A stretch of DNA of 64,000 nucleotides from Macrostomum hystrix (Eukaryota; Animalia; Platyhelminthes): NCBI GenBank assembly GCA_950097015.1, contig CATNEN010000007.1, forward strand, positions 1,364,001-1,428,000. The letters run 5' to 3'. The notes below the pieces were generated by a model, which was not told the origin of the DNA, did not search any database, and saw only the letters and a program-made list of their open reading frames with translations. Of this stretch, positions 32,082 to 55,718 are shown piece after piece. The translations under genes were made by a program, and so were the position numbers. Each line of letters starts with the position of its first letter. The first letter of the stretch is position 1.

Positions 32082-35000
32082 GGGGGTACATTTACGGATT
32101 CATCAGTGGTTACGCTGAGTTGAATATATACGGCTTATAGTTGACTATCTGAACTGTTGAAGTGAGGGTACATTTACGGATTCATCAGTGGTTACACTGA
32201 GTTGAATATATACGGCTTATAGTTGACTATCTGAACTGTTGAAGTGGGGGTACATTTACGGATTCATCAGTGGTTACACTGAGTTGAATATATACGGCTT
32301 ATAGTTGACTATCTGAACTGTTGAAGTGGGGGTACATTTACGGATTCATCAGTGGTTACACTGAGTTGAATATATACGGCTTATAGTTGACTATCTGAAC
32401 TGTTGAAGTGGGGGTACATTTACGGATTCATCAGTGGTTACACTGAGTTGAATATATACGGCTTATAGTTGACTATCTGAACTGTTGAAGTGAGGGTACA
32501 TTTACGGATTCATCAGTGGTTACACTGAGTTGAATATGTACTGCTTATAGTTGACTATCTGAACTGTTGAAGTGAGGGTACATTTACGGATTCATCAGTG
32601 GTTACACTGAGTTGAATATATACGGCTTATAGTTGACTATCTGAACTGTTGAAGTGAGGGTACATTTACGGATTCATCAGTGGTTACACTGAGTTGAATA
32701 TATACTGCTTATAGTTGACTATCTGAACTGTTGAAGTGGGGGTACATTTACGGATTCATCAGTGGTTACACTGAGTTGAATATATACGGCTTATAGTTGA
32801 CTATCTGAACTGTTGAAGTGGGGGTACATTTACGGATTCATCAGTGGTTACACTGAGTTGAATATATACGGCTTATAGTTGACTATCTGAACTGTTGAAG
32901 TGGGGGTACATTTACGGATTCATCAGTGGTTACACTGAGTTGAATATATACGGCTTATAGTTGACTATCTGAACTGTTGAAGTGAGGGTACATTTACGGA
33001 TTCATCAGTGGTTACACTGAGTTGAATATATACGGCTTATAGTTGACTATCTGAACTGTTGAAGTGGGGGTACATTTACGGATTCATCAGTGGTTACACT
33101 GAGTTGAATATATACTGCTTATAGTTGACTATCTGAACTGTTGAAGTGGGGGTACATTTACGGATTCATCAGTGGTTACACTGAGTTGAATATATACTGC
33201 TTATAGTTGACTATCTGAACTGTTGAAGTGGGGGTACATTTACGGATTCATCAGTGGTTACACTGAGTTGAATATATACGGCTTATAGTTGACTATCTGA
33301 ACTGTTGAAGTGGGGGTACATTTACGGATTCATCAGTGGTTACACTGAGTTGAATATATACGGCTTATAGTTGACTATCTGAACTGTTGAAGTGAGGGTA
33401 CATTTACGGATTCATCAGTGGTTACACTGAGTTGAATATACGGCTTATAGTTGACTATCTGAACTGTTGAAGTGGGGGTACATTTACGGATTCATCAGTG
33501 GTTACACTGAGTTGAATATATACTGCTTATAGTTGACTATCTGAACTGTTGAAGTGAGGGTACATTTACGGATTCATCAGTGGTTACACTGAGTTGAATA
33601 TATACGGCTTATAGTTGACTATCTGAACTGTTGAAGTGAGGGTACATTTACGGATTCATCAGTGGTTACACTGAGTTGAATATATACTGCTTATAGTTGA
33701 CTATCTGAACTGTTGAAGTGGGGGTACATTTACGGATTCATCAGTGGTTACACTGAGTTGAATATATACGGCTTATAGTTGACTATCTGAACTGTTGAAG
33801 TGGGGGTATATTTACGGATTCATCAGTGGTTACACTGAGTTGAATATATACGGCTTATAGTTGACTATCTGAACTGTTGAAGTGAGGGTACATTTACGGA
33901 TTCATCAGTGGTTACACTGAGTTGAATATATACGGCTTATAGTTGACTATCTGAACTGTTGAAGTGGGGGTACATTTACGGATTCATCAGTGGTTACACT
34001 GAGTTGAATATATACGGCTTATAGTTGACTATCTGAACTGTTGAAGTGGGGGTACATTTACGGATTCATCAGTGGTTACACTGAGTTGAATATATACGGC
34101 TTATAGTTGACTATCTGAACTGTTGAAGTGAGGGTACATTTACGGATTCATCAGTGGTTACACTGAGTTGAATATATACGGCTTATAGTTGACTATCTGA
34201 ACTGTCGAAGTGGGGGTACATTTACGGATTCATCAGTGGTTACACTGAGTTGAATATATACTGCTTATAGTTGACTATCTGAACTGTTGAAGTGAGGGTA
34301 CATTTACGGATTCATCAGTGGTTACACTGAGTTGAATATATACGGCTTATAGTTGACTATCTGAACTGTTGAAGTGGCCGGGTACATTTACGGATTCATC
34401 AGTGGTTACACTGAGTTGAATATATACGGCTTATAGTTGACTATCTGAACTGTCGAAGTGGGGGTACATTTACGGATTCATCAGTGGTTACACTGAGTTG
34501 AATATATACTGCTTATAGTTGACTATCTGAACTGTTGAAGTGAGGGTACATTTACGGATTCATCAGTGGTTACACTGAGTTGAATATATACGGCTTATAG
34601 TTGACTATCTGAACTGTTGAAGTGGCCGGGTACATTTACGGATTCATCAGTGGTTACACTGAGTTGAATATATACGGCTTATAGTTGACTATCTGAACTG
34701 TTGAAGTGGGGGTACATTTACGGATTCATCAGTGGTTACACTGAGTTGAATATATACGGCTTATAGTTGACTATCTGAACTGTTGAAGTGGGGGTACATT
34801 TACGGATTCATCAGTGGTTACACTGAGTTGAATATATACGGCTTATAGTTGACTATCTGAACTGTTGAAGTGGGGGTACATTTACGGATTCATCAGTGGT
34901 TACACTGAGTTGAATATATACGGCTTATAGTTGACTATCTGAACTGTTGAAGTGGGGGTACATTTACGGATTCATCAGTGGTTACACTGAGTTGAATATA

Positions 35001-35500
35001 TACGGCTTATAGTTGACTATCTGAACTGTTGAAGTGAGGGTACATTTACGGATTCATCAGTGGTTACACTGAGTTGAATATATACGGCTTATAGTTGACT
35101 ATCTGAACTGTCGAAGTGGGGGTACATTTACGGATTCATCAGTGGTTACACTGAGTTGAATATATACTGCTTATAGTTGACTATCTGAACTGTTGAAGTG
35201 AGGGTACATTTACGGATTCATCAGTGGTTACACTGAGTTGAATATATACTGCTTATAGTTGACTATCTGAACTGTTGAAGTGGGGGTACATTTACGGATT
35301 CATCAGTGGTTACACTGAGTTGAATATATACGGCTTATAGTTGACTATCTGAACTGTTGAAGTGGGGGTACATTTACGGATTCATCAGTGGTTACACTGA
35401 GTTGAATATATACGGCTTATAGTTGACTATCTGAACTGTTGAAGTGAGGGTACATTTACGGATTCATCAGTGGTTACACTGAGTTGAATACATACTGCTT
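32082..35500. repeat. 82 bp satellite, about 42 highly homogeneous units
   Basis: Unit GGGTACATTTACGGATTCATCAGTGGTTACACTGAGTTGAATATATACGGCTTATAGTTGACTATCTGAACTGTTGAAGTGG; period 82 measured between 32084 and 32166. Confidence 0.98.
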
Positions 35501-37012
35501 AAATTCGACTATCATGACAATTAATTTACACTTGCACTTCAGGAAACAGAGTTCTGGGGCTTTTGGCGTTAAATTCGTATCAGATTAAGATGAGAAATCC
35601 ACTTCTATACTGACATCCAATTAATCTAATTTTTGCTGAGATTGAGGTACATGTAGAGCTACTTGTTACGATTGTACTCGATACGTACAGTACATTACCA
35701 GCAATCGACCTCAATGCCGTTACTGTTAAAATCTTAAACACGAAACACTTTCTTGTTTTTTCAAAAGTACAGTCGGCTGAACTTGGGTACTTAAGGCATC
35801 GGTTTGCTTGCTGTACATATCGAAAATTGATTAATTTTTTATTAAGTAACAAATTGTACACAAAATTATTTTAATGCTGGAATGGCGATATGTTAAGCAT
35901 ATAATTTCCAAAGAATAACACGTCGTTATATACTATCAACCACTTTCATAGTAGGCTTCTCACAGTAGGTGTAACAAAATATGCGCCATTTAAGACTGGC
36001 TTTATACGGGATGGTATCGGGCGCATTTCGTAAGCTACTTATTTATTAGCAAGCAGTAAGACGAAGTACAATTTGTATATTTACTAGCTACTCGTAAATA
36101 AGAAAAATGTGCATATTGCAATAACTGCTCAACAGGGGGTAAGTACAGAGTACACGGACTTGAGAATGCGCAAAATAATATCAAATTAAGGTGAGAAGCA
36201 TGTATCTTTGCAGTTAGCAACCAGTACTCAGTATTCCAGCGCTGCATTGGTGGGATGGCAGGCCCGCTAGTCGGCTAGATGGGTAGATGCAGACAGTGCA
36301 TAATATGCAATTATCTTCCGTCGTACATTGAGAAACCGCGCATCGCGAAGGTGGCCGACACTGACGGCCGGCTACGGTTTCTGCTCGTGACAGACAGGCT
36401 TCGCCACTGTTTTTGAAAGGCTGCCTCCGAATAATCTAAACTGTCGAGTCCAGTTCGCATTTCCTGGCAGGGTGGGAATTGAACTTGAATATAAAATTCA
36501 ATAAATAAGTCACAAATTTAAGTAATTAAAAGCATCTTTTACCTGTATTTAAGCCTAAAAGTGCCACTACATCTTTTGGTGCCGAGTGCGATTGTTCTCC
36601 AGTCCAGCAGTTGTGCACCACGGAACATAGGGAAAAAATGAATGAAAGCAGGAAATTATATTGAGAACACGCAGATTGAGAGCTGAATCGCAAATGATAC
36701 TAAATCTTAAACTAAAAGTAGCGTTCATTGCTTTGATTTCTTGATTGACGTACCGGAAACAAGACAAAATAGGTCAACTTTGTGAGAGGGAGTCTACTAT
36801 AACAGCAAATTTCTGGGTATAAAGAATGTGAATAGATAGAATAAAATATATGAAGTGATTGGTTCGTGGATATTCAGTACAGAAGGTTGTAAAACACCTA
36901 GACTAACTAGTAGTGACGTCTTGGCCAGTGCAAAAGATTGAAACGCGCACTGTTCACTTTCACGCCACGATGAGGCGCGTCACGTTCGTGAAAGAAAAAT
37001 TTATCTGACAAA

Positions 37013-37834
37013 TGCAGAGGGAAAATGTCAAAGCAATGAATGCACATTGACAATCCCAGCATTAGTTTTATGCAGAGGGAAAAATGTCAAAGCAATGAAT
37101 GCACATTGACAATCCCAGCATTAGTTTTATGCAGAGGGAAAATGTCAAAGCAATGAATGCACATTGACAATCCCAGCATTAGTTTTATGCAGAGGGAAAA
37201 ATGTCAAAGCAATGAATGCACATTGACAATCCCAGCATTAGTTTTATGCAGAGGGAAAAATGTCAAAGCAATGAATGCCCATTGACAATCCCAGCATTAG
37301 TTTTATGCAGAGGGAAAAATGTCAAAGCAATGAATGCACATTGACAATCCCAGCATTAGTTTTATGCAGAGGGAAAAATGTCAAAGCAATGAATGCCCAT
37401 TGACAATCCCAGCATTAGTTTTATGCAGAGGGAAAAATGTCAAAGCAATGAATGCCCATTGACAATCCCAGCATTAGTTTTATGCAGAGGGAAAAATGTC
37501 AAAGCAATGAATGCCCATTGACAATCCCAGCATTAGTTTTTTGCAGAGGGAAAAATGTCAAAGCAATGAATGCCCATTGACAATCCCAGCATTAGTTTTT
37601 TGCAGAGGGAAAAATGTCAAAGCAATGAATGCCCATTGACAATCCCAGCATTAGTTTTTTGCAGAGGGAAAAATGTCAAAGCAATGAATGCCCATTGACA
37701 ATCCCAGCATTAGTTTTTTGCAGAGGGAAAAATGTCAAAGCAATGAATGCCCATTGACAATCCCAGCATTAGTTTTTTGCAGAGGGAAAAATGTCAAAGC
37801 AATGAATGCACATTGACAGTCCCAGCATTTTTTT
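37013..37834. repeat. 59 bp subterminal repeat array, about 14 units
   Basis: Unit GCAGAGGGAAAAATGTCAAAGCAATGAATGC[A/C]CATTGACAATCCCAGCATTAGTTTTAT. Confidence 0.96.
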
Positions 37835-37929
37835 GTGTCAGATAGCAGATACTTAATAGTAAAGTGTTGCATTTTGACTTAAATATTATGAGACTTTTTG
37901 GTTTGATGCACTTAGCTGCTAATATATAT

Positions 37930-40610
37930 TTAACACGCGGTCTCGTCATCATCAGAATCATCTGATGCTGAATTGAATGAGTTATCTAGATCGTCCAGTC
38001 GTTCGTTAGAATCATTTTTGTCTAAACTGTCAACCGTGGGAGTTAAACTTTGGATTGAGTCTTGGTTGACTGAGAGCATTGCTATAGGGACACTTTCAAT
38101 TTGCCGGTAAATAATCTGAAACAGTCGGTGAAAGTGTGCCGGTAGACCTGGTTGACCTTCTAAAGTTATACAATGCTCTTGAATACGCTTCTGAATATCA
38201 CGCCATTCATCAAAAAGAAAGTTTTTTTCCTCATCAAGCCTCTCTTTTTTATGACTTACGTCAATGGCGCGTCTACGAAAGCTTCCTGTAAAATCGTTTT
38301 TAGCAATTCCGGAATAGAAGCTATGCTTAGGGTTTTGAAGTTCTGTAAAAGTTGGTCTATAGTTTTGTGGCAATTTGGAATAGAGTTTCTGCATTTCCGA
38401 AGTTAGACTAAAAACTCTACGAGCACAACTTTTTGTTCGACTTTGACCTGTGGAAGTACCAAGTTCTCTAAGCCAATATATTCTTTGAGTGGCAACTGAC
38501 CTTAAAGAGCCCAGCGTATCTTCTTCAAGAGAGGCGTGACCCGAAATTGATTCCATATGCCATTGCTGGCCTAAGACCAGAATCTGCTCATCCGATACGT
38601 CAAAGCGAGTGTCAATACAACCAGAATTTTTTAAGACAGCCATTTCATGCATTAGAGCTTGAATTTCGTTTTTTATTGCTGTAGAGGTAGTTGTAATCAA
38701 TTTCAACCTTTGCGCAAACCACACATGTGCATTTAAAAGTTGTTGAGCATTGAAATTGTGTAAAATATGGGATATGGACATTGTCCTCCGATCATTCCGC
38801 ATGTACTTAAAAAACTTTCCATACGGTCTTAAGGCAGCCCAGGCTCGTTCAGAATGCTCACCGTCACACAAGCCAGCTCCCGGAGTAACGCGTACGGATA
38901 AATTCAGCTGACAGCTAGTTTTATGTCCAAGGACGTGAAACGCATTAACAGCACACATGCTGCTATGGACATCAGCCCCGGACTGTGCAACGATAGACTT
39001 GACCCGATTGGAGACACGACAACCTGAAATTGAAACGATTTCGAGTATATTCGAGCAAGAAAACTTTTTATGCCACTTTCAATATTTTTTGGAAAACTGT
39101 TAAAAATATTTTGCACGAAGTATGAATTATAATGATATGATTTAAACTGTACGCATGTTAAATCGGATTACTCACCAACGTCATAAATAAACAGTAGATG
39201 CTTTGACACTGGCGTCGTTTTTAAATAATGAAGCAGGCATTCCTCTGGATAGCAAAGACGCTCTCCTGGAGTATTTATATTACACCCTGTCACAAGCCTA
39301 TTGTGTCTGCAGAACAGACCAAAGAATCCATAGACGTTGTTCCGTGAGGCACCTCTCGAGGTCTCTTTAGTTGTACTACCAGCTCTCCAGTTAGGACAAC
39401 TGTCAGGCTCAGGATGATGGACAGTAGAACCTTGTTGAGAATTTCCATCTACGTAAATAAGAGGTTCAGGCAAAATACGACCATCACCTGGTAAATCCTT
39501 CTGCTTTCCACCCGACGCTGCAAATTGCTGCCAACCGAAGAGACCATCACCACATAGAACAGTCTTGCGTTTAGAGTTTTTTTTCTGGGCAACTTAGGCA
39601 TGTTTTTGGCCAACATGAATTATGGTTTTGCAACTCGCGAAAGCGCAAAAGTACACCGTACCGCTGAATACGTTGGTAGACACTCTTCGCTAAGTCTGGA
39701 CTCCAGCAACCTTGTCCCACGACTGTGCCCTTAAAGAATGAGTGAATTGCTCTATGCATAGGCAACTGTCCATCCATGCACATTGAATCAAGAAGTGAAA
39801 GGAAACTAAAGGAAAAAAAAAGTTAAACATTCGCCATCTGATGAAGCCGTTGCAGGGAAGTAGCCCTGAGACAGCAAAGCACAACAGGTGTCGCATGCTG
39901 CACATGTAAAAACTTTTGCCTGGACGCTTCCGGTTATGTTAATTAACTGCACGTTGCTCGCTGCATTAAATACTTTGCCTCTCGCACAGTCATTACAGCA
40001 GTAAAGTTTTGGAAAAGATATGGCTGCCCCGGAAGTTTCCTCACTAAACATCAGTAGATCGATCTGCGGGAGGAAGTTACATTTTAGTTTACATTTTTGA
40101 TTGGCATAGATTGCTAAAATTGCTGTTGAGATCTTTTTTTCTTGTTTCGTTTAAAAAAGTGCACTTATGAGCTAAAGATCACTAAATATATGTAGGTTTG
40201 CTTACATTCCAGAGTAGAAATTTATGAGCAACGAAATCTCCATGAGTTACTTCCTTGCAGTCAGCACATAGATCCACGTTACAGGTTATACAGCGAAAAA
40301 TACCTTGGTTTTCTCGGCAGCGTATGCACTGGCTCAAAATAAATGACTTCCGATAACTCGGTGAACAATTTTCAACAAATGAATCATAATTTTCCCACTC
40401 GATAAAGCAATCGGACGAACTTTCAAAGTCGAAATCTGCTTCTTGAAAAACAGAACTGGACGTGCCAGAAGTGTTTTGAACTGCAGATTTAGCACTATGT
40501 TGATTCCAACAGTCTTTACCGGCAGAGTATTTTGTTGATCTTGGTCGTCCACGCAGGCCAGAAACGTAAGTTACCTTGCGTGTTTTCTTCAGGGTTTTAA
40601 AACGGTACAT
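37930..40610 (-). CDS. KDZ (Kyakuja-Dileera-Zisupton) transposase with N-terminal B-box-like Zn finger and CxC domain; exons 40610-40206, 40063-39176, 39023-37930; about 790 aa if two homopolymer frameshifts are corrected
   Basis: C-x2-C..C-x2-C..C-x2-C..H..H finger; CAACDTCCALLSQGYFPAT (CxC-type); FSFLSLLD; CLSCP; VLCGDGLF; GFFGLFCRH..GERLCY; YDVGC formed across the 39175/39023 splice; AFHVLGHKTSCQ..GAGLCDGEHSERAW. Frame breaks only at an A9 run (39813-39821) and a T8 run (39577-39584) on the plus strand. Confidence 0.85.
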
Positions 40611-40879
40611 CTGAAATAAGTAAAATGTACTTACTTTAATTTGATTTAATGAAGTTTAATAATGCAACAAATATCATGTTTGACCAGGACTATTTGAATC
40701 CTTATTATTTGTATCCACTACTTTAGGGCACCGCAAAATATATAATAATATAATCATAACGACTAAGAGTTAAATAATCTACCGGAAAATGCCTTTAAAG
40801 GTGAAAGCTCTTGGCTCGTCTGATTGATAGGTAGATCTGGAATTTATTACTTTTCGTTTTCATTTATTTTTAAGTAGTT

Positions 40880-41190
40880 TCTGTTCAATATGTTGTAGCG
40901 GTTGAAATCATTGTGCCATGTTTCAACAGCTTGCAGCAACTGAGACCAATAAGTACTTTAAACAACTTAGAGGTGAAGTCTGCAGTTCAAAGTGTTCCCA
41001 ATATTGAATCAGATATTAAAAGTTCGCAGCCAATTAACGGCTGTGCTTCTATGTTTACTAATCTTGACTAATCAAAAGGGAAACTAACGTTAGTATTTAA
41101 GTTGGCGATATTATACTTCTGGCGATTTGAGTATAATATCCCTACCAATTTCAGCTCAAATGAATGCGGCAGAAGGTAGCCTGTTGGGCG
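40880..41190 (-). pseudogene. Possible degraded Mutator-like transposase fragment
   Basis: Broken frames include STYWSQLLQAVETWHNDFNR, reminiscent of the animal MULE motif TNNAVEGWHN.FN; multiple stops and frameshifts. Confidence 0.3.
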
Positions 41191-41370
41191 ATTGAACTGC
41201 CAGGTTAGTGTTTTTTTACTAATGGAGCCGAGATATATATTTATGTACATCAGGAATTTAGGCAGCTATCATATGCTAAACTGTAATTGTTTTTGCTTGT
41301 TGTAGCCTAGTTCGGTAATTTACAGAATTTACAGAACTTCAAAAAAATTCGCTTAAAATACGAGCGAATA

Positions 41371-41980
41371 CCAGATACACCCTATCTGGTGACCGGCAAT
41401 GAAACCTGGATACCGCACTTTGACCCTGAGACCAAGCAGAAAGCAAGGTGTGGGCGTTGAAGGGTTCAGATCCACCTGTGAAAGCGAAGCGAGACCAGCA
41501 CTGCAAGAAGATCATGCTGACCCTTTTCTTCGATCAAGAAGGTTGACCTGACCCTTCTGGGTCTAACCCTGACCATCGACTTCCTTGGGCCTAACAGCAC
41601 GGTTAACTCGGACCGGTACACGGAGACGCTGACTAAGATGAAATCAGACATCCGCAACAAGCGCAGGGCTGCGATGAAGCCTCACCTCCTGTTGCACGAC
41701 AACGCTCGACCTCACACGGCCAAGAAAACGCTTGATCGTATCAACGAACTCAATTTTGATCTGCTTGCGCACCCACCCTACTCACCAGACTTAGCTCCTT
41801 GCGACTACGCAATTTTCCCTCAGTTAAAGAAGCACCTGCGGGGGCGCATCTTTGACCATCGCGACAACTTGGAAGGTGAATTCAGGCGGGTTCTGCTGCA
41901 CGAAATTCCGCGTCGAGCTTATGCAGATGCCATCAATGCGCTTCTCACGCGATGGACTAAGTGCTGCGAGCTAAGGGGGA
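41371..41980 (+). pseudogene. Mariner (DD34D) transposase catalytic-domain remnant
   Basis: VTGNETW (first D changed to N), LLHDNARPH, YSPDLAPCD with 34 residues between the second and third D; frameshift and stop between 41445 and 41570. Confidence 0.92.
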
Positions 41981-42324
41981 CTTCGTCGAAAAGTCGTCAG
42001 TCGACGGCGATGGCGATGCTGCCAGGGGTTAGCGATATGGGCGGCACCGGCCGCCTCCTCGCTGCGTCTGTCATGGAGGCTCCCTGCCGCTAAGTCAAAG
42101 AAGTAGGTCAGCAATGGCGATGCTGCGTGACCGATTCCGCTGGCCTTGACTTGGTGTAACTCTACCCCTTACCCCTTGTTCTAATTTTAGCTAAAACTTT
42201 TTAATGAGTTGACATATTTACTTGATTTAAAAAGCATTAGAACTGCTGAATGTTTATATATCAGTGACGTAAGTTTCAATAAACTATGTTGCACCAGTTT
42301 GCCTGTGCATCGATTTTTCCCGCT

Positions 42325-42344
42325 ATTTCTGGGACACCCTACGT
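42325..42344 (-). mobile_element. Solo Tc1-like terminal inverted repeat
   Basis: Minus strand TACGTAGGGTGTCCCAGAAA, typical Tc1-type end; no partner found. Confidence 0.4.
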
Positions 42345-42587
42345 ATAAAAACAAATATTTCAGAAACGACTTTGAAAATTTTCATCTTTACTTCCATGGA
42401 TTTCCTTCCAATTTCAATGAGGTGAATATAATTTAACACATATTTTGTTAGCATGTTGCAGTAAATTTTTAGACTACATGATAAAATTCTGTAAATTTCA
42501 TTGCATTTTCTTATTTTAGAACAATGTCAAATGTCTGTTAGAGCAATTGGAATCCCATCGGATGTTCGCATAATCAGGCCGCTAACA

Positions 42588-42735
42588 GCAGCGACCTTCT
42601 TGCCGCCATGGACGTGTTCCAGCTGGTGGCCAAGTCAGAGGGTCTGGGACCACTTCAGATGGGCGTCACCGGTGTCGACATGTTTGATTTGCTGCTCCAA
42701 CCATTCCATGAGGCAGCCGCAGCAATAGCTCTGCA
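42588..42735 (+). pseudogene. Isolated ~148 bp copy of the methyltransferase-like exon
   Basis: Matches 30762-30909 and 62108-62255 with few substitutions, unrelated flanks. Confidence 0.88.
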
Positions 42736-43301
42736 AGGAGTTTTCTGATGTTGGTTACTCAAATGCCAATATCTGTAAAGTGACTGGTCACAGGCAGGTG
42801 AAAACAGTCAAGCAGTACCTGCAATTTGGAAGTCAATGCACATTCAAGATGTAGGCCACGTGCAGCGCACTGCATACATTGCTACATAGAGCTAACTCAT
42901 CCATAGGCAACACAAATCAAGTGGAGACAAATGTTAATTTTTGTTTCTCTATTTATACTGTTAATATACAATAGATTTAAAAAAAAGTTGAATATGTTTT
43001 TTGCTGCATGCATAAATGCATTGGCAACATTGCCATGCCAGTGTAATTATGTAGTGTGCATTATGCAGGCCACTGACCAATTTGTACACCACTGCATGCC
43101 ACTTCTGAAAATACACACAGGAAAATTCTTGTCTGCACTACATGATCCACACTATGGATAGATATGGCATAGGCGTTATCTGCATGCTTAAGTGTTGTAC
43201 AAGAAAAGTTTGTTTGAGACACTACAACCAACTATAGTCATCAAAACTATTATGTCTTGAATGTTTTTGTACATATGATTGTTGGATTATGTTTATTCCA
43301 G

Positions 43302-43670
43302 TCTGGTGAGCTGGAAAGTCTAGGCAATCCTAGATTTATTGCATTGTGCTCCAACACTAAAACTTTTGTTGCTGATTCTTCAGGCCAGCTAGTGAGAGAG
43401 AATTGTGCAGGTGATATCACTGTGAGGCTCCCTTTTTGTTCCGTTTTACATGGAGACTAAAGTTATGAGATTCTTGCCTTTTCAATTGATGGGTCTGTCT
43501 GTCTCAAAGCCCAGAGGGATTTTGATTTGCCAAAGGAAATCACAGGTCTTAGCTGTGACAGCAAGTGCCAGGCTCTCTACATTGCTCAGTGGAATTCATT
43601 TTCTGTGGCAGGTTTAATTGGCTGCAGTTTGAGGGTGATCGATATAGGCAGCCAGCCAGTCTGTTTTTAG
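43302..43670 (+). pseudogene. Possible NHL/beta-propeller gene fragment with one internal stop
   Basis: After a TTCCAG acceptor: SGELESLGNPRFIALCSNTKTFVADSSGQ..LHGD*SYEILAFSIDGS..ITGLSCDSKCQALYIAQW; blade-like P.FIA/FVAD/LYIA motifs. Confidence 0.35.
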
Positions 43671-43689
43671 GACTGATTGCAAAACAAAA

Positions 43690-43795
43690 CACCAGCAGAT
43701 AAGCATAAATTTTGAGCATGGATTCATATGGATAAAATTGAAATTATAAGCATAGGACCACGTGGATAAAATTGAAATTATCAGCATAGGACCAC
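43690..43795. mobile_element. Right TIR fragment of the 9 bp-TSD MITE family, with tandemly reiterated subunits
   Basis: GATAAAATTGAAATTATCAGCATAGGACCACGTG x3 ending ATAAGCACTTCC; similar to 7225-7292. Confidence 0.6.
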
Positions 43796-45233
43796 GTGGA
43801 TAAAATTGAAATTATCAGCATAGGACCATGTGAATAAGCACTTCCTATGGGACACAGCTAGGCCCTGGAAGCATGGTTAATAAAAAATTATTAATTATAT
43901 TAGTTGTCTATACAACTACGGGCAACATATTTAAGGAAAATAGGGGCCTATGAGTGAATAGAAAGCACTGACAGTCATACTTACCTTAACAAATAGCTAA
44001 TTTGACGATTTAATCTAAATTAATTAGAAACTTTATATTTACTATTTTGCAATAAAAATGCGCTGCGACAAAAAAATCGCAATGCTTTTGACTGAGACTT
44101 CAAAATAAATTAAAGATTTAAGAATCGATCTATTATCTAGTAGTAGTATCAGTAGATAATTAACACAAGTAACCTAATCGGTTTAGGATAGCATAGTGTA
44201 GTGCGGCTGGAAATGTTCTTTTAAAATTGCGCTAAATATTTAATTGTTGCTATACAGTAACTATAGCGATTGCAAAAAACATTATTATGTTATTAATTTT
44301 TACTTTTATGACCCTTGAAAATAATGCAAATATAAATTATAAATTATTTTAATCGTTGTCTAATTAAAATATAATCGCACCAGTTTGAAAAGCGCGCTGC
44401 AATCGATTGTAAGTGTAAGGCGCGGCGCGGCGTGTAAACTGAAGACGTTAAATTGCTGTAGTAAAACTGTTTAAATTCGCGGCCTTCAAACCCAGTTATA
44501 CTACAATAGAATAGGATAGAATATTGGATAGGAATAAAACAACCGCAAAAACTGTAATTTAAAATTTAAATTTCAAGTCAATAAAGCGCTTGTCTGTAAC
44601 TAAAAACTGTTAAAGCAATTTTAATTTTTGTGCAATAAAATGAGATTTTTTACTAATTCTACGTTTTGTTTTTAGCGTTTGTTTTGTTTTAACGTGTTTA
44701 CGTAACATTTTATCGTCCGGGAGTTTAGTTTGCGTGAAGGAATTGGGACGTACCAAAATAAACACATATGAACACAAAATGAAGCAACGTTTAATAAAAA
44801 CAGAATGTATATGAATAAATTTCGAATTTAGATTGCAGAAAACAAAAAATATCAAATAATTCACAATTGGTTATGATCGATCGTGTAACCTTTCAATGGT
44901 CCCTAGCAATCGAAATTCATTACTAATTCATTTGTTGGCCGGAACTCGGGAGGGAGATAAGATACCAAACTATTACCTTATTAATGTACGAAACACAGTC
45001 CCTCTTCCTCTATTTAGAATCTCAATCTTGTGCATCGGAACGCGCCAAATTTTTAAATTATGCATACTTACATACCTAGCTTCTACTTATTCATTCCTAT
45101 ATTTATAATTGTATACTTATTCTCTCTTGTATCTTCTAAATTACAGATTTTAGGTTCAACTGTTACGGTATAGAATAAATAAGAATGAAAGAACGATTAA
45201 GAACGATAAAGAACTTTTAAGTTGGGCTTTCTA

Positions 45234-46167
45234 CCAGCCAGTATAATAACATTTTTTCCCTTCACTTCTATCAAGTCCGTGTAGATTGTTGAGTAGCGCT
45301 GAATCCTCGCATGCGGAAGGTCCCTAGCTCGATTACCAATTACATTTGATTTTTGTAATTGACGAAATAAAACTTATCACTTTTTGTCATTTATTCTTTT
45401 CATTCCTCCTTTCTATTGATCTGTCATCTATTTCATTTCTAAAATGCATATAATATGCCTGTGTTGTATTATAGTTCTTGCCGTTCTAGCCAAAAAGATA
45501 TAATTCATTATGCAAGAGTTTTCCATATACGAAATTCGTTCGCCACTGCTTCGAGTTCTTTCGAGTTCTAGGGACAAGTTTGGTTTCTTTTGAAAAATGG
45601 CTTTGTCATGTATGTATCTCATGTATCTCATTGAGCTACTTAGTCGAAGTTATTCTACACTACGCCGTAAAAATGGCTTCCCTATATGTTTGGAAATGTC
45701 TAGAAATGGCTAGTGTTATGGCCAGCCAGTATAATAATATTTTTTCCCTTCACTTGTATTAAGTCTGTGTAGATTGTTGAGTAGCGCTGAATCCTCGCAT
45801 GCGGAAGGTCCCTAGCTCGATTACCAACCACTACTGATTTTTGTAATTGACGAAATAAAACTTTTTCACTTTTTGTCATTTTTTCTTTTCATTCCTCCTT
45901 TCTATTAATCTGTCATCTATTTCATTTCTAAAATGCATATATGCCTGTGTTGTATATAGTTCTTGCCGTTCTAGCCAAAAAGCTATAATTCATTATGCAA
46001 GAGTTTTCCATATCGAGTTCTTTGAGTTCTAGGGACAAGGATTCTAGTTTGGTTTCTTTTGAAAAATGGCCTTGTCATGTATGTATCTCATGTATCTCAT
46101 TGAGCTACTTAGTCGAAGTTATTCTACACTACGCCGTAAAAATGGCTTCCCTATATGTTTGGAAATA
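45234..46167 (+). repeat. Tandem duplication of a ~460-490 bp block, each copy with a degenerate tRNA-like segment
   Basis: 45234-45697 repeated at 45722-46167; GTGTAGATTGTTGAGTAGCGCTG..GAAGGTCCCTAGCTCGATTACC near 45279 and 45767. Confidence 0.85.
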
Positions 46168-46245
46168 AGTTATTTATATAGTTTCTTACTACATGCACGT
46201 GGGTTAGGAATGCAATTCCCCCAAGGCCACCGCCAGTAAGGCTAG

Positions 46246-46416
46246 CCCCCCGTGGGTCCACGTGGAATCACCCGGCTAGCCGAGTATTTTTTGACTAGTG
46301 GAAGTGTCGGCTAGCCGGCGGCCGTTAGATCAGCTCGCGGCCGCCGGCTAGCCGACACTTCCACTAGTCAAAAAATACTCGGCTAGCCGGGTGAATCCAT
46401 GTGGACCCACGGGGGG
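46246..46416. repeat. GC-rich palindrome, 79 bp arms, 13 bp spacer
   Basis: 46246-46324 is the reverse complement of 46338-46416 with about 2 mismatches; spacer TTAGATCAGCTCG. Confidence 0.95.
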
Positions 46417-49221
46417 TAGGGGGTAGGGGGTAGACTTCCGATAAATTTTACATGAATCATGCTACTCGTCTACTGCAAGTAGAAAGTATGAAATATGAAG
46501 TATGTAACTGGCTATCTAAATATTTTTCCTTTGCACTGATAATCATTTATTTCCAAACATATAGGCAAGCAAACCACAGTTCATACTAATTAATACAATA
46601 CAACTAAAGCTGAATGAGTTTAGATGGGACTTACTGATTAAGTGGATTTTACGTGTAATAGATATATGACGCTTTTCTATCGTGCTAAGTAAGAACCAAG
46701 AAGTGATCACCCCGTCTCAAACAAATGATACTTCCACCTTAACAGCGAGAGCTTAATGGCTTATCAGAAGCCAGAACTAAAATTACAACACATCCACTGT
46801 ATAAAATGGCTATAAAACGAAATAATTAGTAAATATTTAGCATCACAATAAAATATCGGATCAAAAAAATTCATTAGTAAAAATAATACGGAAAAAAATT
46901 CGAACCCCCCTCGTAACACTCAAACAGAGCGTTCTCTCTATCAACACGCCACACAGGTTGAGTTATACATGCATAAAAAGACATATTTATACTAGTTATA
47001 AGACAAAAACAAAATCAAATCATATTTATTTTAATTTTAAATTACTCATATTTATATAACTTGGTTGCTAGATTATATTGGCTTTATTTTTGACGGCAGT
47101 TAATTGAAATATTAAACTAAAGCTGTTTTACCCAGCTCTCCAACCCGTAAAATAGGCTTTTCATTCTACCCAGAAATCAGAATCAGTCATTCATTCTACC
47201 CAGAATTCCAGAACCAGAATCAGTTCTAAAATTCCAGAAAGTATAGCGGTATAACTCTACAGTGCCTTAAAAGAAACGAAACAGAAACAAGTAAGACTGA
47301 TTATGTACTCGTAATTATTTATGACAATGATCCGAATAAGGTATTAGCAAAAAATAGCTCGCTGTGGGTCTAGTGTCACTAAATGATGTGCCATTGCCCG
47401 CAGTCCTTCTGCAATCATTCTCAATATAATTGTATTCATTTGTCTATAGAATTCGTCACTTTTTTAGTGTTACGTGGAAAGAAAGAATTGTATTTTTATA
47501 AATACTCTTTTTACATGTCAAAAACGAGTCTGAATAGTCCGGATTTTACGTCAATTTCATAACTTTACGTGCGTATGGTATAACAAATAATTATACAGAA
47601 CTAAGTATGCGCATTAAAAAAAGTGTATTAGTACTTCTCAAAAAAAGTTTTTCTTAGTTACGTTGTGGTATATTTTTTTATTTAAGTTTTTATTTAATAG
47701 TTTAGAATTGTTTAAATAAAAAACGCGCCCTAATGCGCTGCGCCACCAAACTAGTTTAGTTGGCATTTTACACTTAGGATATCATTACATCCATAACAGA
47801 TTGTACTTTACTGTGTCTAGAGAAGGTATTTTTTAAAGTTACTTTGTCAATTTAAGTATTGAAATTTTCTATTAATTTTTTTAAAACAAAGGTGAGCAAT
47901 GTTTTTTCGTTTTAAATTTAGTTACTAGTACTACTTATGCCAGCAAATCGAAATCCCAATCCAATAGTTTTGATTTTCAACATTTATTAACTGACACAAT
48001 GAAAATGTTACATGTAAAGTTAATAATAGATGTTAGTTAAAACCTAAGACTAAACTACTAAGAGTGTTACTAATGCAACTTATATCCAAATTATCAGTCA
48101 GTGGTCTGGCTGACTAGCTAAATTTTTTAAACCAAAATGGTAATTGCTATAAAGTATAGACTTCAAGTTTTTAATAAATTTTAACTTTGCTTGCTTTTTG
48201 GGCTTCTTGAACTTTGACTTACTAGACTTAGCTGCAGGGTGGTCCATGGACCCTGCAGGGAGGCGAGGGTCTCTTGAACTTTAGGTCTATATAATAAAAT
48301 AGTTCTTGTTTTGATAGGATGATAAATCTGTGGCTACTAAGGCTTTTTGATGTGCTGATTTCATTTTTAATCAGATTTGTTATAGCTTTAGCCCCCTACC
48401 ATGCCATAGTCAGAAAAGTGGTAGAGTGCGTGTCAAAACAATTTTTTGCTCCTCCCAAAATTGTGCAACGTTACTACCTGCCTTGCAACAATAATAATTA
48501 ATATACCTGGCATAAATAATGTGGTGTGGAATTTTTCATAATTGTCTTTGGCCATAACCAGCTCGGAAGCATCCAAAGAGCAGAAAAAATCGCAGCTACA
48601 TTTCTAACCTTTATTAGTGACTTCAATCAGGCAATATTTCCAAGCTTCCAACTTCCAAGCATTCTGTAGCATTTTTTACTGGATTTGTCACTACTACCCT
48701 GTGGCTATATAACAGCTAAGTAAACTAAACTAAACTGAACTGAACTGAATTGAACTGAATTGTTACGAATACTATAAACTGAATTGTTTCTGCACTGCAC
48801 TTTTTTGCTGCATTTAGCACAATTTTAAATTTATTCATAAAAATAATTTTGCAAACAAAAGTAAATTTATGCCATGCGCTCGTATACCTTTTTATAAAAC
48901 AGCAACCCTTTTGTGACATAATATTCTCACTAGGCCCTACCCCTATAATATTTTTATATTATTATGGTACAGGCATACATATTACAAGAGTTACAAGATG
49001 AAATAAGATTATTATGGTCAGTACTGATTATATTATAAGAAATTGAGATTATCAAACCGAAAAAAGAAAAAGGAAATTTAAATTTAAATTTACTCTAATT
49101 TTAAAGCATAAAGTAGGCACTAAAGCTTCGTATTTCAGTTTGAGTCTTAAATTAAAGTGCATAGGAAATAGTGCAATAAAATGGTTTTATTTTGTAATTC
49201 TAATTTTTTTCTTACACACAG

Positions 49222-50435
49222 ATGGTTCTAACTGGTGCCAATGTGTTTTTGCAAAACAAAGGAAAGGCAGGTAAGTTTTCTTATGGTCAGTATTACTTAT
49301 AAATATACTACAGGGATATATAGTAAGACTAGAGCTCCAGAAATAGTAATGTATGAGTAGGCAGCATTATTTTTAATACAAAACATTTTAGTCCATTTAT
49401 GCAGCATAACATTGTTTTTTTCTGAAAGTCTTGAATATTGTTATATTTTCTAGGCTACATCATATGTTATATTCTCTGTGGGGTGCATCTATTAATTTAC
49501 GTAAAAGCTAGAAATAAATAAATATAATAATTAGTCACTATGTTTTAGTAAAATTTAAAAATTCAAATCTTACTTTAATTCTAGTGTGGACCGCCGAACT
49601 GCGTCGGGAGTATATGAGTCTGCCAATCGAAGAAAAGCGACGTCTTCAAGAAGAAGCTAAAAATCAGCAGAAGAAAATAAGAAAAGTGGTAAATGATTTA
49701 AAAGGTACAGGTGAGACATACGTACTTATTAAATTAACCCGACGTGGAGCCGATTTTACCACGTCCAATGACATATCGCCTAATGTTAGAAGCACTATGG
49801 AGCCCCATATAAATAAAATAGCAGAACTAATGGAGGACGCGAAAAAAACAGAACAACAAAATATGGCAAATGAGCGCAGTGATGTTCAGCTTGCTGAAAC
49901 TAGTCAGCCACGAAACCTAGCTTCTGTTTATAGCGATGTGAAAAAAATGCGACAAGAAATTTTTTTAAGGGCTAAAATTGCACATAAAACAGCGACAGGT
50001 TTCGACGGCAAGATTCCATGGAGCCTTGTCGGAAAAAGTTGCAAATTCATTCCAGAATTGAAGGACCCCCATCACTTATCCAGAGAAAAATGTGTAGCCA
50101 TTTTAAGGGAACTCGAAAATACAGAACTGACATTTTGTAATTCAGTTTCCATTGATGTATCACCTGATCATGATACACCAATGGAAGAAGGGCTACAAGT
50201 CGTTGACTACCATAATATCACCACAAGTGACTTGGAGAGTGAAGGAGATACGGCACTGACTTCCGTAACCGCGAAATATCGGCAACACTTTCACGAAAGT
50301 GAAGGTTCAACAAATTTTAATCCTTTCAATACTCCATTTGTAGATGACGCAAATAGACTTGCTCAGTCATCTTTATATGGGGCGAGCTCTGCACCCAACA
50401 TTACGCTTAGACTAGATACTAGACAAACGGAATGA
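49222..50435 (+). CDS. HMG-box-like protein, 299 aa; exons 49222-49270 and 49585-50435
   Basis: Phase-1 GT-AG join gives MVLTGANVFLQNKGKAVWTAELRREYMSLPIEEKRRLQEEAKNQQKK, resembling a compact HMG box (N.F helix 1; W/Y..L..EEK..L...A helix 3); 900 nt uninterrupted. Domain call is from motif recall only. Confidence 0.6.
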
Positions 50436-50604
50436 AATTTTAATATGAAACAATTATTAGAGGCCCACACGACGCCAATAGCTTAATATTAAATAGTATA
50501 TAAGATGCAATATGCTATGGTTTTCAATGTTTTCAGCCGAAAATAGTCACTGTGCAGAGAGCTGCTATCTTTACAGAGACTAGAGTCTATATTCTGTCAA
50601 ATAT

Positions 50605-51185
50605 TGCTGGGATTGTCAATGTGCATTTATTGCTTTGACATTTTCCCTCTGCATAAAACTAATGCTGGGATTGTCAATGTGCATTCATTACTTCATGACA
50701 TTTTTCCCTCTGCATAAAACTAATGCTGGGATTGTCAATGTGCATTCATTACTTCATGACATTTTTCCCTCTGCATAAAACTAATGCTGGGATTGTCAAT
50801 GTGCATTCATTGCTTTGACATTTTCCCTCTGCATAAAACTAATGCTGGGATTGTCAATGGGCATTCATTGCTTTGACATTTTCCCTCTGCATAAAACTAA
50901 TGCTGGGATTGTCAATGTGCATTCATTGCTTTGACATTTTCCCTCTGCATAAAACTAATGCTGGGATTGTCAATGTGCATTCATTGCTTTGACATTTTTC
51001 CCTCTGCATAAAACTAATGCTGGGATTGTCAATGGGCATTCATTGCTTTGACATTTTTCCCTCTGCATAAAACTAATGCTGGGATTGTCAATGTGCATTC
51101 ATTGCTTTGACATTTTCCCTCTGCATAAAACTAATGCTGGGATTGTCAATGGGCATTCATTGCTTTGACATTTTCCCTCTGCATT
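50605..51185. repeat. 59 bp subterminal repeat array, about 10 units
   Basis: Reverse complement of the 37013-37834 monomer. Confidence 0.96.
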
Positions 51186-52244
51186 TGTCAGATAAATTTT
51201 TCTTTCACGAACGTGACGCGCCTCATCGTGGCGTGAAAGTGAACAGTGCGCGTTTCAATCTTTTGCACTGGCCAAGACGTCACTACTAGTTAGTCTAGGT
51301 GTTTTACAACCTTCTGTACTGAATATCCACGAACCAATCACTTCATATATTTTATTCTATCTATTCACATTCTTTATACCCAGAAATTTGCTGTTATAGT
51401 AGACTCCCTCTCACAAAGTTGACCTAATTTGTCTTGTTTCCGGTACGTCAATCAAGAAATCAAAGCAATGAACGCTACTTTTAGTTTAAGATTTAGTATC
51501 ATTTGCGATTCAGCTCTCAATCTGCGTGTTCTCAATATAATTTCCTGCTTTCATTCATTTTTTCCCTATGTTCCGTGGTGCACAACTGCTGGACTGGAGA
51601 ACAATCGCACTCGGCACCAAAAGATGTAGTGGCACTTTTAGGCTTAAATACAGGTAAAAGATGCTTTTAATTACTTAAATTTGTGACTTATTTATCGAAT
51701 TTTATATTGAAGTTCAATTCCCACCCTGCCAGGAAATGCGAACTGGACTCGACAGTTTAGCTTATTCGGAGGCAGCCTTGCAAAAACAGTGGCGAAGCCT
51801 GTCTGTCACGAGCAGAAACCGTAGCCGGCCGTCAGTGTCGGCCACCTTCGCGATGCGCGGTTTCTCAATGTACGACGGAAGATAATTGCATATTATGCAC
51901 TGTCTGCAGCTACCCATCTAGCCGACTAGCGGGCCTGCCATCCCACCAATGCAGCGCTGGAATACTGAGTACTGGTTGCTAACTGCAATGATACATGCTT
52001 CTCACCTTAATTTGATATTATTTTGCGCATTCTCAAGTCCGTGTACTCTGTACTTACCCCCTGTTGAGCAGTTATTGCAATATGCACATTTTTCTTATTT
52101 ACGAGTAGCTAGTAAATATACAAATTGTACTTCGTCTTGCTGCTTGCTAATAAATAAGTAGCTTACGAAATGCGCCCGATACCATCCCGTATAAAGCCAG
52201 TCTTAAATGGCGCCCAATTTCATCATTTCTAATATTTCTAATAA

Positions 52245-53280
52245 ATTTTATCTTGTATCTTGAATCATGTATCTTTTATATTATATCTTGTATCAGTTTC
52301 TTTAATCTTGTATCATGTATCTTCTATATTGTATCTTGTATCTTTCATCTTCTATCTTGTATCTTTTATCTTCTATCTTGTATCAGTTTCTTTAATCTTG
52401 TATCATGTATCTTCTATAATGTATCTTGTATCTTTCATCTTCTATCTTGTATCTTTTATCTTCTATCTTGTATCAGTTTCTTTAATCTTGTATCATGTAT
52501 CTTCTATATTGTATCTTGTATCTTTCATCTTCTATCTTGTATCTTTTATCTTCTATCTTGTATCTTTTATCTTCTATCTTGTATCAGTTTCTTTAATCTT
52601 GTATCATGTATCTTCTATATTGTATCTTGTATCTTTTATCTTCTATCTTGTATCTTTTATCTTCTATCTTGTATCTTTTATATTATATCTTGTATCAGTT
52701 TCTTTAATCTTGTATCATGTATCTTCTATATTGTATCTTGTATCTTTCATCTTCTATCTTGTATCTTGTATCTTTCATCTTCTATCTTGTATCTTTCATC
52801 TTCTATCTTGTATCTTTTATCTTCTATATTGTATCTTGTATCTTTTATCTTCTATATTGTATCTTGTATCTTTTATCTTCTATATTGTATCTTGTATCTT
52901 TTATCTTCTATCTTGTATCAGTTTCTTTAATCTTGTATCATGTATCTTCTATATTGTATCTTGTATCTTTCATCTTCTATCTTGTATCTTTTATCTTCTA
53001 TCTTGTATCAGTTTCTTTAATCTTGTATCATGTATCTTCTATATTGTATCTTGTATCTTTCATCTTCTATCTTGTATCTTTCATCTTCTATCTTGTATCT
53101 TTCATCTTCTATATTGTATCTTGTATCTTTCATCTTCTATCTTGTATCTTTCATCTTCTGTCTTGTATCTTTCATCTTCTATCTTGTATCTTTTATCTTC
53201 TATCTTGTATCTTGTATCTTTCATCTTCTATCTTGTATCTTTTATCTTCTATCTTGTATCAGTTTCTTTAATCTTGTCTC
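52245..53280. repeat. TATCTT(G/C/T)-based 7-mer satellite with higher-order blocks
   Basis: TATCTTG/TATCTTC/TATCTTT units punctuated by recurring TATCAGTTTCTTTAATCTTGTATCATG blocks; begins ~30 bp after the element end. Confidence 0.95.
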
Positions 53281-53606
53281 TTAATTTAGAGTATTTTGCG
53301 TCACTGTATAGCTCACCTTACTATATCATTGTTTCTGATTTCAAAGCATCAATTTTTTAGTGCCATGTTTTTACATTAAAATTTGTTTGCAACGATTGCA
53401 TGTGTTTCAATAAGTAAATCTTATAATTCGTAGGCTTCTTGAATAAAACACTATTTTCTCCTTGTTGCTTTCTGAATTTAAATTTGCCTAATAGCAACTT
53501 TGTTGAGTTACATTTTCATTTCCCTGGTGTAAATTAGAAATCTCTAAAATTCTAAAATCAGCTGTCTGTTATTGCTACAATATTTTATCTGTTGCAGCGA
53601 CATCTC

Positions 53607-53760
53607 GCAGACTAATTTCTATTTGGCATTTCTTCGGCATTTGGCAGACTAATTTCTATTTGGCATTTCTTCGGCATTTGGCAGACTAATTTATTTCTAT
53701 TTGGCATTTCTTCGGCATTTGGCAGACTAATTTCTATTTGGCATTTCTTCGGCATTTGGC
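53607..53760. repeat. 37 bp tandem repeat, 4 units
   Basis: GCAGACTAATTTCTATTTGGCATTTCTTCGGCATTTG at period 37 (53607, 53644..). Confidence 0.92.
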
Positions 53761-53783
53761 ATTGGCTTTCTTTTCATTTAAAA

Positions 53784-54239
53784 ATGGTTAAAAGGCGACC
53801 AATGGGCCCTCCTCCTCCTTCGCCAAAAAAGAAGAGAGTTAGTTGGAACTCTCTAGTTTTGGCGGAGGAGGAGGAGGAGCGGCAGCAGCGGCAGCCGCAG
53901 ACGCCGCAGACGCGGCAGCAGCAGCGGCAACAGCAGCAGCAGCAACAGCAGCAACAGCAGCAGCAGCAACAGCAGCAGCAGCCACAACAGCAGCAGCAGC
54001 AACAGCGGCAGCAGCAGACGCCGCAGACGCGGCAGCAGCAGCGGCAACAGCAACAGCAGCCGCAACAGCAACAGCAGCCGCAACAGCAGCCGCAACAGCA
54101 ACAGCAGCAGCGGCAACAGCAACAGCAGCCGCAACAGCAACAGCAGCCGCAACAGCAGCAGCGGCAACAGCAACAGCAGCGGCAACAGCAACAGCAGCCG
54201 CAACAGCAACACCAGCCGCAGCCGCAACAGCAACAGCGG

Positions 54240-54273
<34 letters not shown>

Positions 54274-54587
54274 GGCAACAGCAACAGCAGCCGCAACAGC
54301 AACAGCCGCAACAGCAACAGCAGCCGCAGCCGCAACAGCAACAGCAGCAGCGGCAACAGCAACAGCAGCCGCAACAGCAACAGCAGCAGCCGCAACAGCA
54401 ACAGCAGCAGCCGCAACAGCAACAGCAGCCGCAGCCGCAACAGCAACAGCAGCAGCGGCAACAGCAGCAGCAGCCGCAACAGCAGCGAACATATGCGCAA
54501 GTTGTGGTCAGTAAAGTGAATAGTGCGCGCGAAATGTTTGCCGATTTAAAAACTTCGCCAAAAGCGAAATTCATTAATTATGCTTGA
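53784..54587 (+). CDS. Candidate 267 aa polyglutamine protein with N-terminal PKKKRVSW motif
   Basis: ATG-initiated ORF with non-repetitive N-terminus (33 aa) and C-terminus (33 aa) around ~200 codons of CAG/CAA/CGG/CCG repeat; trinucleotide repeats are open by nature, so coding status is uncertain. Confidence 0.35.
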
Positions 54588-55212
54588 ATCGGCTAATAAT
54601 AAGGCCAGGGCGCGAATTTCAGCCTAGTGACTTTCAGCAGAAACTTTTTCACTTTAAATCTCATTGTTTTAAATTTCAGAAATGCTGTGTGAGGATATGA
54701 AATAGCGTGTGAGGATCTGATTTTAAAAAGCCTAATTAAATTTAATATTATTGCACTATTTAACATCAATAACGTCATCATGCACGTAAAATGATTGGTT
54801 TTCCAGAAATTATAACTAACGCACACTGGAACTTAAAATCGCTAGTTCTGATTTCGCTCATGCGAAAGCCACTTCACAAGCACAGCACGGAAGTAACATT
54901 AACAGCAACAGCACAAAACAAGCAACCATCACCACTCACTTTATGCACTTACTCTCGTGAATGATACAATTATGCACCAATGTGTATTTGTGTACTTCAC
55001 ACTTTTGTAGCCGAGGCCACAGAAGCCACTGATCGCGTCACTGCATGAAATATCACGAACTAATCGTATTATTTAACATTATTTAACGATTTAATGTGAT
55101 TAAAACACTATTTCATTTCATTTCATTTTTTAAAAATAACAATTCACAATTCCATAACTATACTCCATTCCACAAAAAACAGAGCCAAAGGCCACCTTGG
55201 CCACCCAGGCCA

Positions 55213-55368
55213 TGGGAGCAGCAGTGGCAGCAGCGGCAGCAGCAGCAGTGGCGGCAGCGGCAGCAGCAGCAGTGGCGGCAGCGGCAGCAGCAGTGGCGGC
55301 AGCAGCAGCAGTTGCAGCAGCAGCAGTGGCAACAGCAACGGCAGCAGCGGCAGCGGCAACAGCAGCGC
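55213..55368. repeat. CAG/CGG/TGG trinucleotide repeat
   Basis: Directly visible; ~50 codon-length units. Confidence 0.9.
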
Positions 55369-55718
55369 CGAGGTGGCCGCAAATGGCGCGCTAAGCGTAG
55401 CCAGCTGGTGAGGTTTATGATATTAAACCGTTTTTTACTATTGGACCATAGAAATACTGTCCCTAAAATATACCTATAGACTACCCCAATCACAAGATGA
55501 TTATGTCAGTTAGTGGCTAAAATTTAGACTTTAGACTTTAGTCCGTGACTTTAGATACGTGCACATATTGCAGTCCAAAAGGTTTTTAGTAGCTATTTAC
55601 ACTTCTATATATTGTTGTCTACTTTGAGCGTCTTAGTCTTCATAATTGAAATAAAAGGTAAAAAATGTTTTTATCTCCTTTCATTCAGGATGCCTTCTTC
55701 GAGTTGCAGCGCGTGCAA

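Follow-up and report, generated by a model that had tools for sequence, protein, structure and literature searches.

Two copies of a giant KDZ DNA transposon, one nested in the tip of the other, in a 64-kb stretch of a flatworm genome

Description of the locus

The window is the whole stretch of Macrostomum hystrix DNA analysed, 64,000 nucleotides in length (contig C7, 1,364,001-1,428,000). It contains a gene for a KDZ transposase, a second, accessory gene on the other side of an inverted junction, and repeated ends that are shared by the two sides. The 220-Mb assembly was searched with two queries, the left end and the terminal 300 bp of the right block. The geometry of the window was obtained by self-BLAST and with a repeat finder. 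Statements on the longer copies (C38, C39, C32, C29; copies are named after their contigs) and on all loci of a second family are taken from coordinate tables only.

The segment 35983-52214 (16.2 kb) had been described in a preliminary description as a head-to-head pair of modules with both ends in common. Its geometry is confirmed. An inverted end of 1.6 kb, composed of an array of 59-bp units and a unique block of about 1 kb (the right block), is present at both borders with 98% identity (35983-37598 against 52213-50599). The GC-rich left ends, each about 79 bp long, lie as facing inverted copies at 46246-46324 and 46337-46415, with six bases between 46324 and 46331. The interiors are otherwise unrelated, with no further match of at least 250 bp between them, and one of them encodes a KDZ transposase, as had been stated. 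Large direct repeats are also present in the window: 21758-27106 corresponds to 46331-51283, and 27109-35517 to 55776-64000. Hence the 16.2-kb segment belongs to a repeat unit larger than itself.

The window very probably holds two copies, C7a and C7b, of one flatworm family of giant cut-and-paste KDZ transposons, C7b being nested in the tip of C7a. The boundaries of the elements, their duplications, the census of copies, the KDZ domain and the nesting are direct observations and are given below.

Termini, duplications and genomic copies

At 13 loci in the genome an accessory-gene-side end is paired with an inverted KDZ-side end at a distance of 22-32 kb, and each pair encloses one right block in KDZ orientation. 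These 13 full-length copies are spread over ten contigs, with different, unrelated flanks at every locus. In the alignment of ends, all accessory-side ends begin CAGCTCG and all KDZ-side ends begin CATCTAA; the termini of the element are 5'-CAGCTCG... and ...TTAGATG-3', i.e. CA...TG. Terminal inverted repeat of 86 bp, imperfect, the two ends agreeing at 81 of 86 positions. Each terminal repeat has two CGGCTAGCCG palindromes, at positions 15-24 and 50-59, and in the copy on C1, the element examined, all four occurrences of CGGCTAGCCG fall in the terminal repeats. The transposase would bind these palindromes and cut at the CA/TG borders.

Perfect target-site duplications of 7 bp flank the element at 11 of 11 independent loci: CAGTCTC (C34), GCGTACA (C38, 26.3 Mb), AGACTGT (C38, 10.3 Mb), GTGGGCT (C38, 0.9 Mb), GCTGGTG (C32), TTTGCAG (C29), ATAGTGG (C39), GGCCGAG (C2), GTCTACT (C33), AAAATTT (C11) and AATAAAC (C1). 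The nested pair adds two more, all 13 being 7 bp long; the expectation of a chance 7-bp match is 6e-5 per locus. Three insertions sit at different positions in one high-copy repeat, and removal of the element with one copy of the duplication restores the uninterrupted repeat, as in a paralogous empty-site test. Six typical copies, which were fetched, are colinear over about 23 kb at 97-99.9% identity. From the colinearity, the duplications and the empty sites it follows that the mobile unit is the whole 22-32-kb element. The family appears to have been active recently.

A 7-bp terminal inverted repeat, GGCGCCA/TGGCGCC, had been proposed earlier from the bases at 21753, 52208-52214 and 35982-35988. 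The bases were quoted correctly, and the repeat is rejected: the other 12 copies start at CAGCTCG, five bases further in. GGCGCCA consists of the last five bases of the duplication GAGGCGC and the first two of the element, and its resemblance to a repeat is thus a coincidence with the flank.

One high-copy repeat has received six independent insertions, on contigs C34, C38, C33, C11, C3 and C1, all in a stretch of about 160 bp and all with different 7-bp duplications. This target repeat has at least 342 candidate copies, many of them 100% identical, encodes a PIF1-like helicase (expectation value, E, 2.8e-20) and looks like a Helitron; no match to it was found in Rfam. The distribution suggests that the stretch of about 160 bp is a landing hot spot.

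A remnant of 97 bp is present on contig C3 (about 13,389,076), inside the Helitron-like repeat. It consists of one terminal repeat with the 7-bp direct repeat CAGTGCT on either side, and may be the trace left by excision or deletion of a copy of the giant family. Short relatives of 4-5 kb occur on contig C8 (3,599,267-3,604,246) and contig C38 (27,980,649-27,984,714). Both ends of the 5-kb relative on C8 are 80-85% like the accessory-side end, and neither gene is carried; the pair on C38 is known, from coordinates only, as two inverted end matches 4.1 kb apart. Both are probably older non-autonomous derivatives.

Nested junction

The junction of the two copies reads ...CGGCCGTTAGAT|CAGCTCG, and the far end of C7b, about 14.4 kb past the window, reads TTAGATG|GTTAGAT|G|GAGGCGC. 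C7a inserted first, at GAGGCGC. The insertion of C7b came later: with the same orientation as C7a, it entered the KDZ-side end of C7a at positions -8 to -2 (within its last eight bases), with duplication of GTTAGAT and displacement of the final G. The order GTTAGAT / G / GAGGCGC shows that C7b entered a C7a that was already enclosed by the GAGGCGC duplication; the reverse order of insertion does not fit the nested signature. The head-to-head pair described earlier is the junction of C7a and C7b with the adjoining halves of both copies. Its 16.2-kb segment is no unit: it straddles two copies, the KDZ gene belonging to C7a and the accessory gene to C7b.

C7b is rearranged. It lacks reference positions 15337-20046, which is nearly the whole KDZ gene, and must therefore have been moved by a transposase from another copy. 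Its transposase is gone, and it has acquired a SET-domain gene, an open reading frame flanked on each side by a direct copy of the 1-kb block. This gene is single-copy in the genome at that identity; many paralogs exist at 30-38% identity, mostly on contig C1. Coordinates of the features of both copies are listed in Table 1.

Table 1. Features of the two nested KDZ elements (positions in the window unless a contig is named)
Feature	Position	Strand	Remarks
C7a, giant KDZ copy, 24.6 kb	21758..46330	+	Final G displaced beyond C7b; 97-99.9% colinear with C34, C1, C11, C33 and C2 copies
C7a left duplication GAGGCGC	21751..21757		Right copy past window, after C7b
C7a accessory-side 86-bp terminal inverted repeat	21758..21843	+	Starts CAGCTCG; two CGGCTAGCCG palindromes
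Accessory gene main exon, C7a	25681..26611	+	Split by a frameshift
59-bp array and first 99 bp of 1-kb block, accessory side of C7a	26783..27106	+	Remainder of block deleted in typical copies
Central filler of C7a	27106..35517		Satellites and gene fragments
30-bp satellite	27106-27641
GST/CLIC-like fragment, weak	27642-27881	+
Methyltransferase-like fragment	30548-31021	+	Weak SAM-methyltransferase-like motif
82-bp satellite	32082-35517
1-kb block (35983-37011) and 59-bp array (37012-37842), beside KDZ gene	35983..37842	-	'Right end' of the preliminary description; internal
KDZ transposase gene (predicted)	37930..40610	-	Three exons: E1 40610-40206, E2 40063-39173, E3 39024-37933; stop 37932-37930
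Eight-A run, exon 2	39577..39584	-	Seven A needed; extra A only in C7a among copies compared
Nine-T run, exon 2	39813..39821	-	Eight T needed for open frame
Mariner-type transposase fragment (DDE_3), upstream of KDZ gene	41521..42090	+	Old; 100% identical in 6 of 6 typical copies
Fragment related to 30548-31021	42542-42745	+	Weak SAM-methyltransferase-like motif
C7a KDZ-side terminal inverted repeat	46246..46330	-	Reads ...CGGCCGTTAGAT; final G missing
GTTAGAT, first copy of duplication from C7b insertion	46324..46330		Second copy after far end of C7b
C7b, giant KDZ copy, 32.0 kb	46331..64000, on to window-equivalent 78378	+	About 14.4 kb past window; rearranged
Accessory gene main exon, C7b	49584..50435	+	Open, 283 amino acids
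59-bp array and full 1-kb block, accessory side of C7b	50599..52214	+	Inverted relative to KDZ-side copies
Zinc-finger and SET-domain open reading frame in C7b	Window-equivalent 68683-69873	-	Beyond window; open, 396 amino acids; Pfam SET E 3e-15
Second-family examples	C1:3463538-3485319; C7:10981330-11005170; C25:9643159-9666722; C26:1254886-1278162		Coordinates only

KDZ transposase gene

The exon model was predicted from sequence only, by comparison of copies and placement of two canonical introns. Intron 1 (40205-40064) has the borders GTAAGC...CAG and intron 2 (39172-39025) the borders GTGAGT...CAG; the phases fit, and the second splice restores a YDVGC motif across the exon border. The three exons would encode a protein of about 796 amino acids if the frames were open. 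The Pfam KDZ profile PF18758 is matched by exon 3 with 54 bits (E 2.4e-14) and by exon 2 with 29.7 bits (E 6.5e-07), at a cut-off of 26.6 bits; together the exons account for positions 4-125 and 149-217 of the profile. In the Atlas the nearest clusters are KDZ, with a score of 0.95. Exon E1 has a B-box-like zinc finger. CxC1 is weakly matched, with 17.8 bits (E 0.004), under its cut-off of 26.9 bits, and CxC2 with E 0.15. A word-based homology search with the last exon gave no match.

Two homopolymer runs in exon 2 close the frame of C7a. The T run has nine T in C7a, C1 and C34 and seven in C2, run lengths being read in these four copies only; the A run has seven A in C1, C34 and C2. An open frame of 217 amino acids in exon 2 of C1 and C34 is also present in four further copies. 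In C39 and in the C38 copy at 26.3 Mb, exon 2 has an open frame of 326 amino acids, as eight T would give, and the last exon is shorter. Homopolymer errors in the assembly may be the source of the closed frames.

Accessory gene

The accessory gene and the KDZ gene are located at opposite ends of the element and are convergent. The 13 elements contain all 13 good copies of the accessory gene in the genome, each directed inward at 3.7-4.6 kb from the end, in agreement with the earlier statement that the gene belongs with the KDZ transposase. The reading frame is open in seven copies and broken in six (five frameshifts, one stop codon).

The product had been described as a spliced HMG-like protein. 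HMGXB3 is a domesticated gene with HMG and KDZ parts, and a divergent HMG domain in KDZ elements was reportedly noted by Iyer et al. in 2014. A reading frame of 283 amino acids is present in C7b, in the interior where this protein had been placed; the HMG box is unconfirmed. No Pfam match is obtained with this exon (E up to 10) or with a candidate upstream exon (E up to 1), each searched singly. None of the 46 HMG_box matches in the genome falls on accessory genes of either family, and no HMG protein is found in a profile search of solved structures with the accessory gene. The GTF2I profile PF02946 has no match anywhere in the genome, the word-based homology search with the accessory frame gives no match, and every score in the Atlas feature search is below 0.9.

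An exhaustive search of 1.8 billion representatives yielded one distant homolog, 475 amino acids in length (E 7e-6, 31% identity), in assembly GCA_002269645.1, which is presumably that of Macrostomum lignano. No KDZ gene is present within 10 kb of this homolog, and a spacing of 20 kb would fall outside the stretch examined. AlphaFold models of the accessory protein are of low confidence, with pLDDT (predicted local distance difference test) values of 53 and 67. In Foldseek the top five matches of a low-confidence model are GTF2I domains (E 0.3-1.1); in VIA-align six GTF2I rows have Z 3.8-5.2 over residues 102-195; and with a model of the domain only, the best template-modelling scores (0.43-0.51) are again those of GTF2I domains, with E of about 9. 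These comparisons of predicted structures are a weak lead towards a TFII-I (GTF2I)-like repeat. The accessory protein would be a DNA-binding helper.

Second KDZ family

A second KDZ family is present in the same genome. Transposase of 827 amino acids, open in a single frame. Downstream of the transposase, at 2-4 kb and on the same strand, is a gene with zinc-finger and SET domains. The accessory gene has a paralog here, 30% identical, which lies 10-28 kb from the KDZ gene on the opposite strand, in convergent orientation, at 10 of 16 loci. The second family thus resembles a further giant element with two genes and, as cargo, a gene for a chromatin enzyme. Since the paralog is only 30% identical and the layout is the same, the arrangement of transposase and partner is conserved and old.

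A broader proposal is speculative and, on the whole, rather unlikely to hold in full. On this view the KDZ elements of flatworms would form an ancient lineage of transposons, very large and with two genes. Across from the transposase, the other end would encode a DNA-binding partner dedicated to the element, either GTF2I-like or a divergent HMG protein, which would be needed to join ends 20-30 kb apart; landing in the 160-bp or so of the Helitron would be preferred, and SET-domain genes for chromatin writers would be passed between families.

Internal array, block and central filler

The array and block are internal to the element. In KDZ orientation they occur once per full-length copy. On the accessory side the full block is found only in C7b and in one degenerate fragment (contig C7, 3.94 Mb), where the accessory gene is followed by the array and then by about 925 bp of the block; in all typical copies the first 99 bp of the block are kept on this side. 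From the 99-bp remnant and the degenerate fragment it is probable that a long inverted repeat inside the element was the ancestral state, lost by deletion from the amplifying lineage. The accessory-side block of C7b is two bases off the two other blocks of C7b (99.8%) and 7-9 bases off the blocks of other elements (99.1-99.3%).

The mariner-type, GST/CLIC-like and methyltransferase-like fragments are present in all copies compared, and their acquisition therefore predates the amplification of the family. Tandem repeats are very abundant in the region: many unrelated minisatellite arrays occur in and outside the elements (1-1073, 14127-15402, 18474-19055, 52249-53282 and 53882-54486 in the window), with periods of 27, 16/50, 21 and 7 and GCA-rich units.

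Alternative explanations

The explanation that survives best beside that of one giant element is a composite origin, and it is improbable. Two simpler KDZ-type units would have come together tail to tail long ago; their inner ends would persist as the internal inverted array and block, and only the outer ends would now be used. Such a history would account for the seemingly ancestral full block on the accessory side, for its 99-bp remnant in typical copies and for the old fragment at 3.94 Mb. Against it, the outer border of the block has neither a CA/TG terminus nor similarity to the terminal repeats, the second family has the same convergent layout with a partner as distant as 30% identity, which makes the two-gene unit old, and the near-identity of the three blocks of C7b is compatible, too, with their duplication or conversion inside C7b.

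A bipartite family, in which an autonomous KDZ element and a separately mobile element with the accessory gene share both ends, was one of two readings in the preliminary description. Both modules do start with the same end of about 86 bp, and in C7b both finish with the same array and block. The supposed right end, however, never terminates an insertion: giant elements contain 16 of the 17 genomic matches to the right block, the last being a fragment of 67 bp (contig C1). The left end has about 39 occurrences in the genome, and each accessory-side end has a KDZ-side partner within a single 7-bp duplication. Neither module is flanked by a duplication or found alone as an insertion, and the full accessory-side block is confined to C7b and the degenerate fragment. 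Two separately mobile modules are thus highly improbable.

Segmental duplication or an error of assembly, in place of transposition, is hardly more credible. The window does contain large direct repeats, and the arrangement is known from the assembly. The ends recur genome-wide, as had been expected of a dispersed KDZ family in an invertebrate and not of a local duplication; the unrelated flanks and locus-specific 7-bp duplications at 13 loci on ten contigs, and the paralogous empty sites, do not fit segmental duplication, and an assembler error would not yield the nested signature GTTAGAT / G / GAGGCGC.

A single 16.2-kb fold-back element with terminal inverted repeats of kilobase length and two divergent genes, the other earlier reading, has the 1.6-kb inverted repeat at both outer borders in its favour and is exceedingly improbable, because the flanks at 35982 and 52215 have no duplication in common (duplications flank the whole 22-32-kb units), the arrangement is found once in the genome, its centre consists of two abutted element termini with the partner of GTTAGAT 32 kb away, and the KDZ half recurs at 12 other loci, where its other side adjoins the central filler and an accessory half.

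Several observations weigh against two nested copies of a giant KDZ family, or against its placement near the fungal Kyakuja elements. The tandem arrangement of C7a and C7b is deduced from the assembly and from the logic of the duplications. None of the copies examined has a fully open transposase frame as assembled, and an autonomous source is therefore hypothetical. At the flanks of the 5-kb relative on contig C8 a duplication is not evident. The flatworm family has 86-bp terminal inverted repeats, and none are described for Kyakuja; the likeness to Kyakuja is one of duplication length and termini.

Relation to known KDZ elements

Kyakuja elements of fungi (e.g. Kyakuja-1_LB) are described with 7-bp duplications, CA..TG termini and no terminal inverted repeats, and Zisupton and Dileera with 8-bp duplications (Kojima 2025, PMC12730594). 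The active elements KDZ1-3 of Cryptococcus are 9-11 kb long, with terminal repeats of 139-241 bp and mostly 8-bp duplications (4-8 bp in KDZ2 and KDZ3) (bioRxiv 10.1101/2025.05.19.654958). No report of KDZ elements in flatworms was found in the literature searched.

The flatworm element is like Kyakuja in its KDZ-type transposase, 7-bp duplication, CA...TG termini and extra genes beside the transposase. It differs in its host, a flatworm and not a basidiomycete, in its length of 22-32 kb and in the absence of a TET/JBP gene. With Zisupton, Dileera and Cryptococcus KDZ1-3 it shares a KDZ transposase, terminal inverted repeats and cut-and-paste transposition with duplications; their CxC-type zinc cluster may have a counterpart here in the CxC1 match below the cut-off. 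Its duplications are 7 bp in all 13 cases, against 8 bp in Zisupton and Dileera, and its length is two to three times that of Cryptococcus KDZ1-3.

Until now the Kyakuja-type hallmarks, the 7-bp duplication and the CA...TG termini, had been characterised in fungi alone; here they are found in an animal. For a very large animal KDZ transposon the exact ends, the duplications and a nested insertion are now given, and the puzzling inverted junction is resolved. The same accessory gene opposite the transposase in two families provides a testable case for a second protein in KDZ transposition; two further leads are the Helitron hot spot, for the choice of targets, and the SET-domain cargo, for the carriage of chromatin enzymes by transposons. 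The giant flatworm element is neither a two-part nor a fold-back transposon. It is a further, well-documented example of the known KDZ kind.

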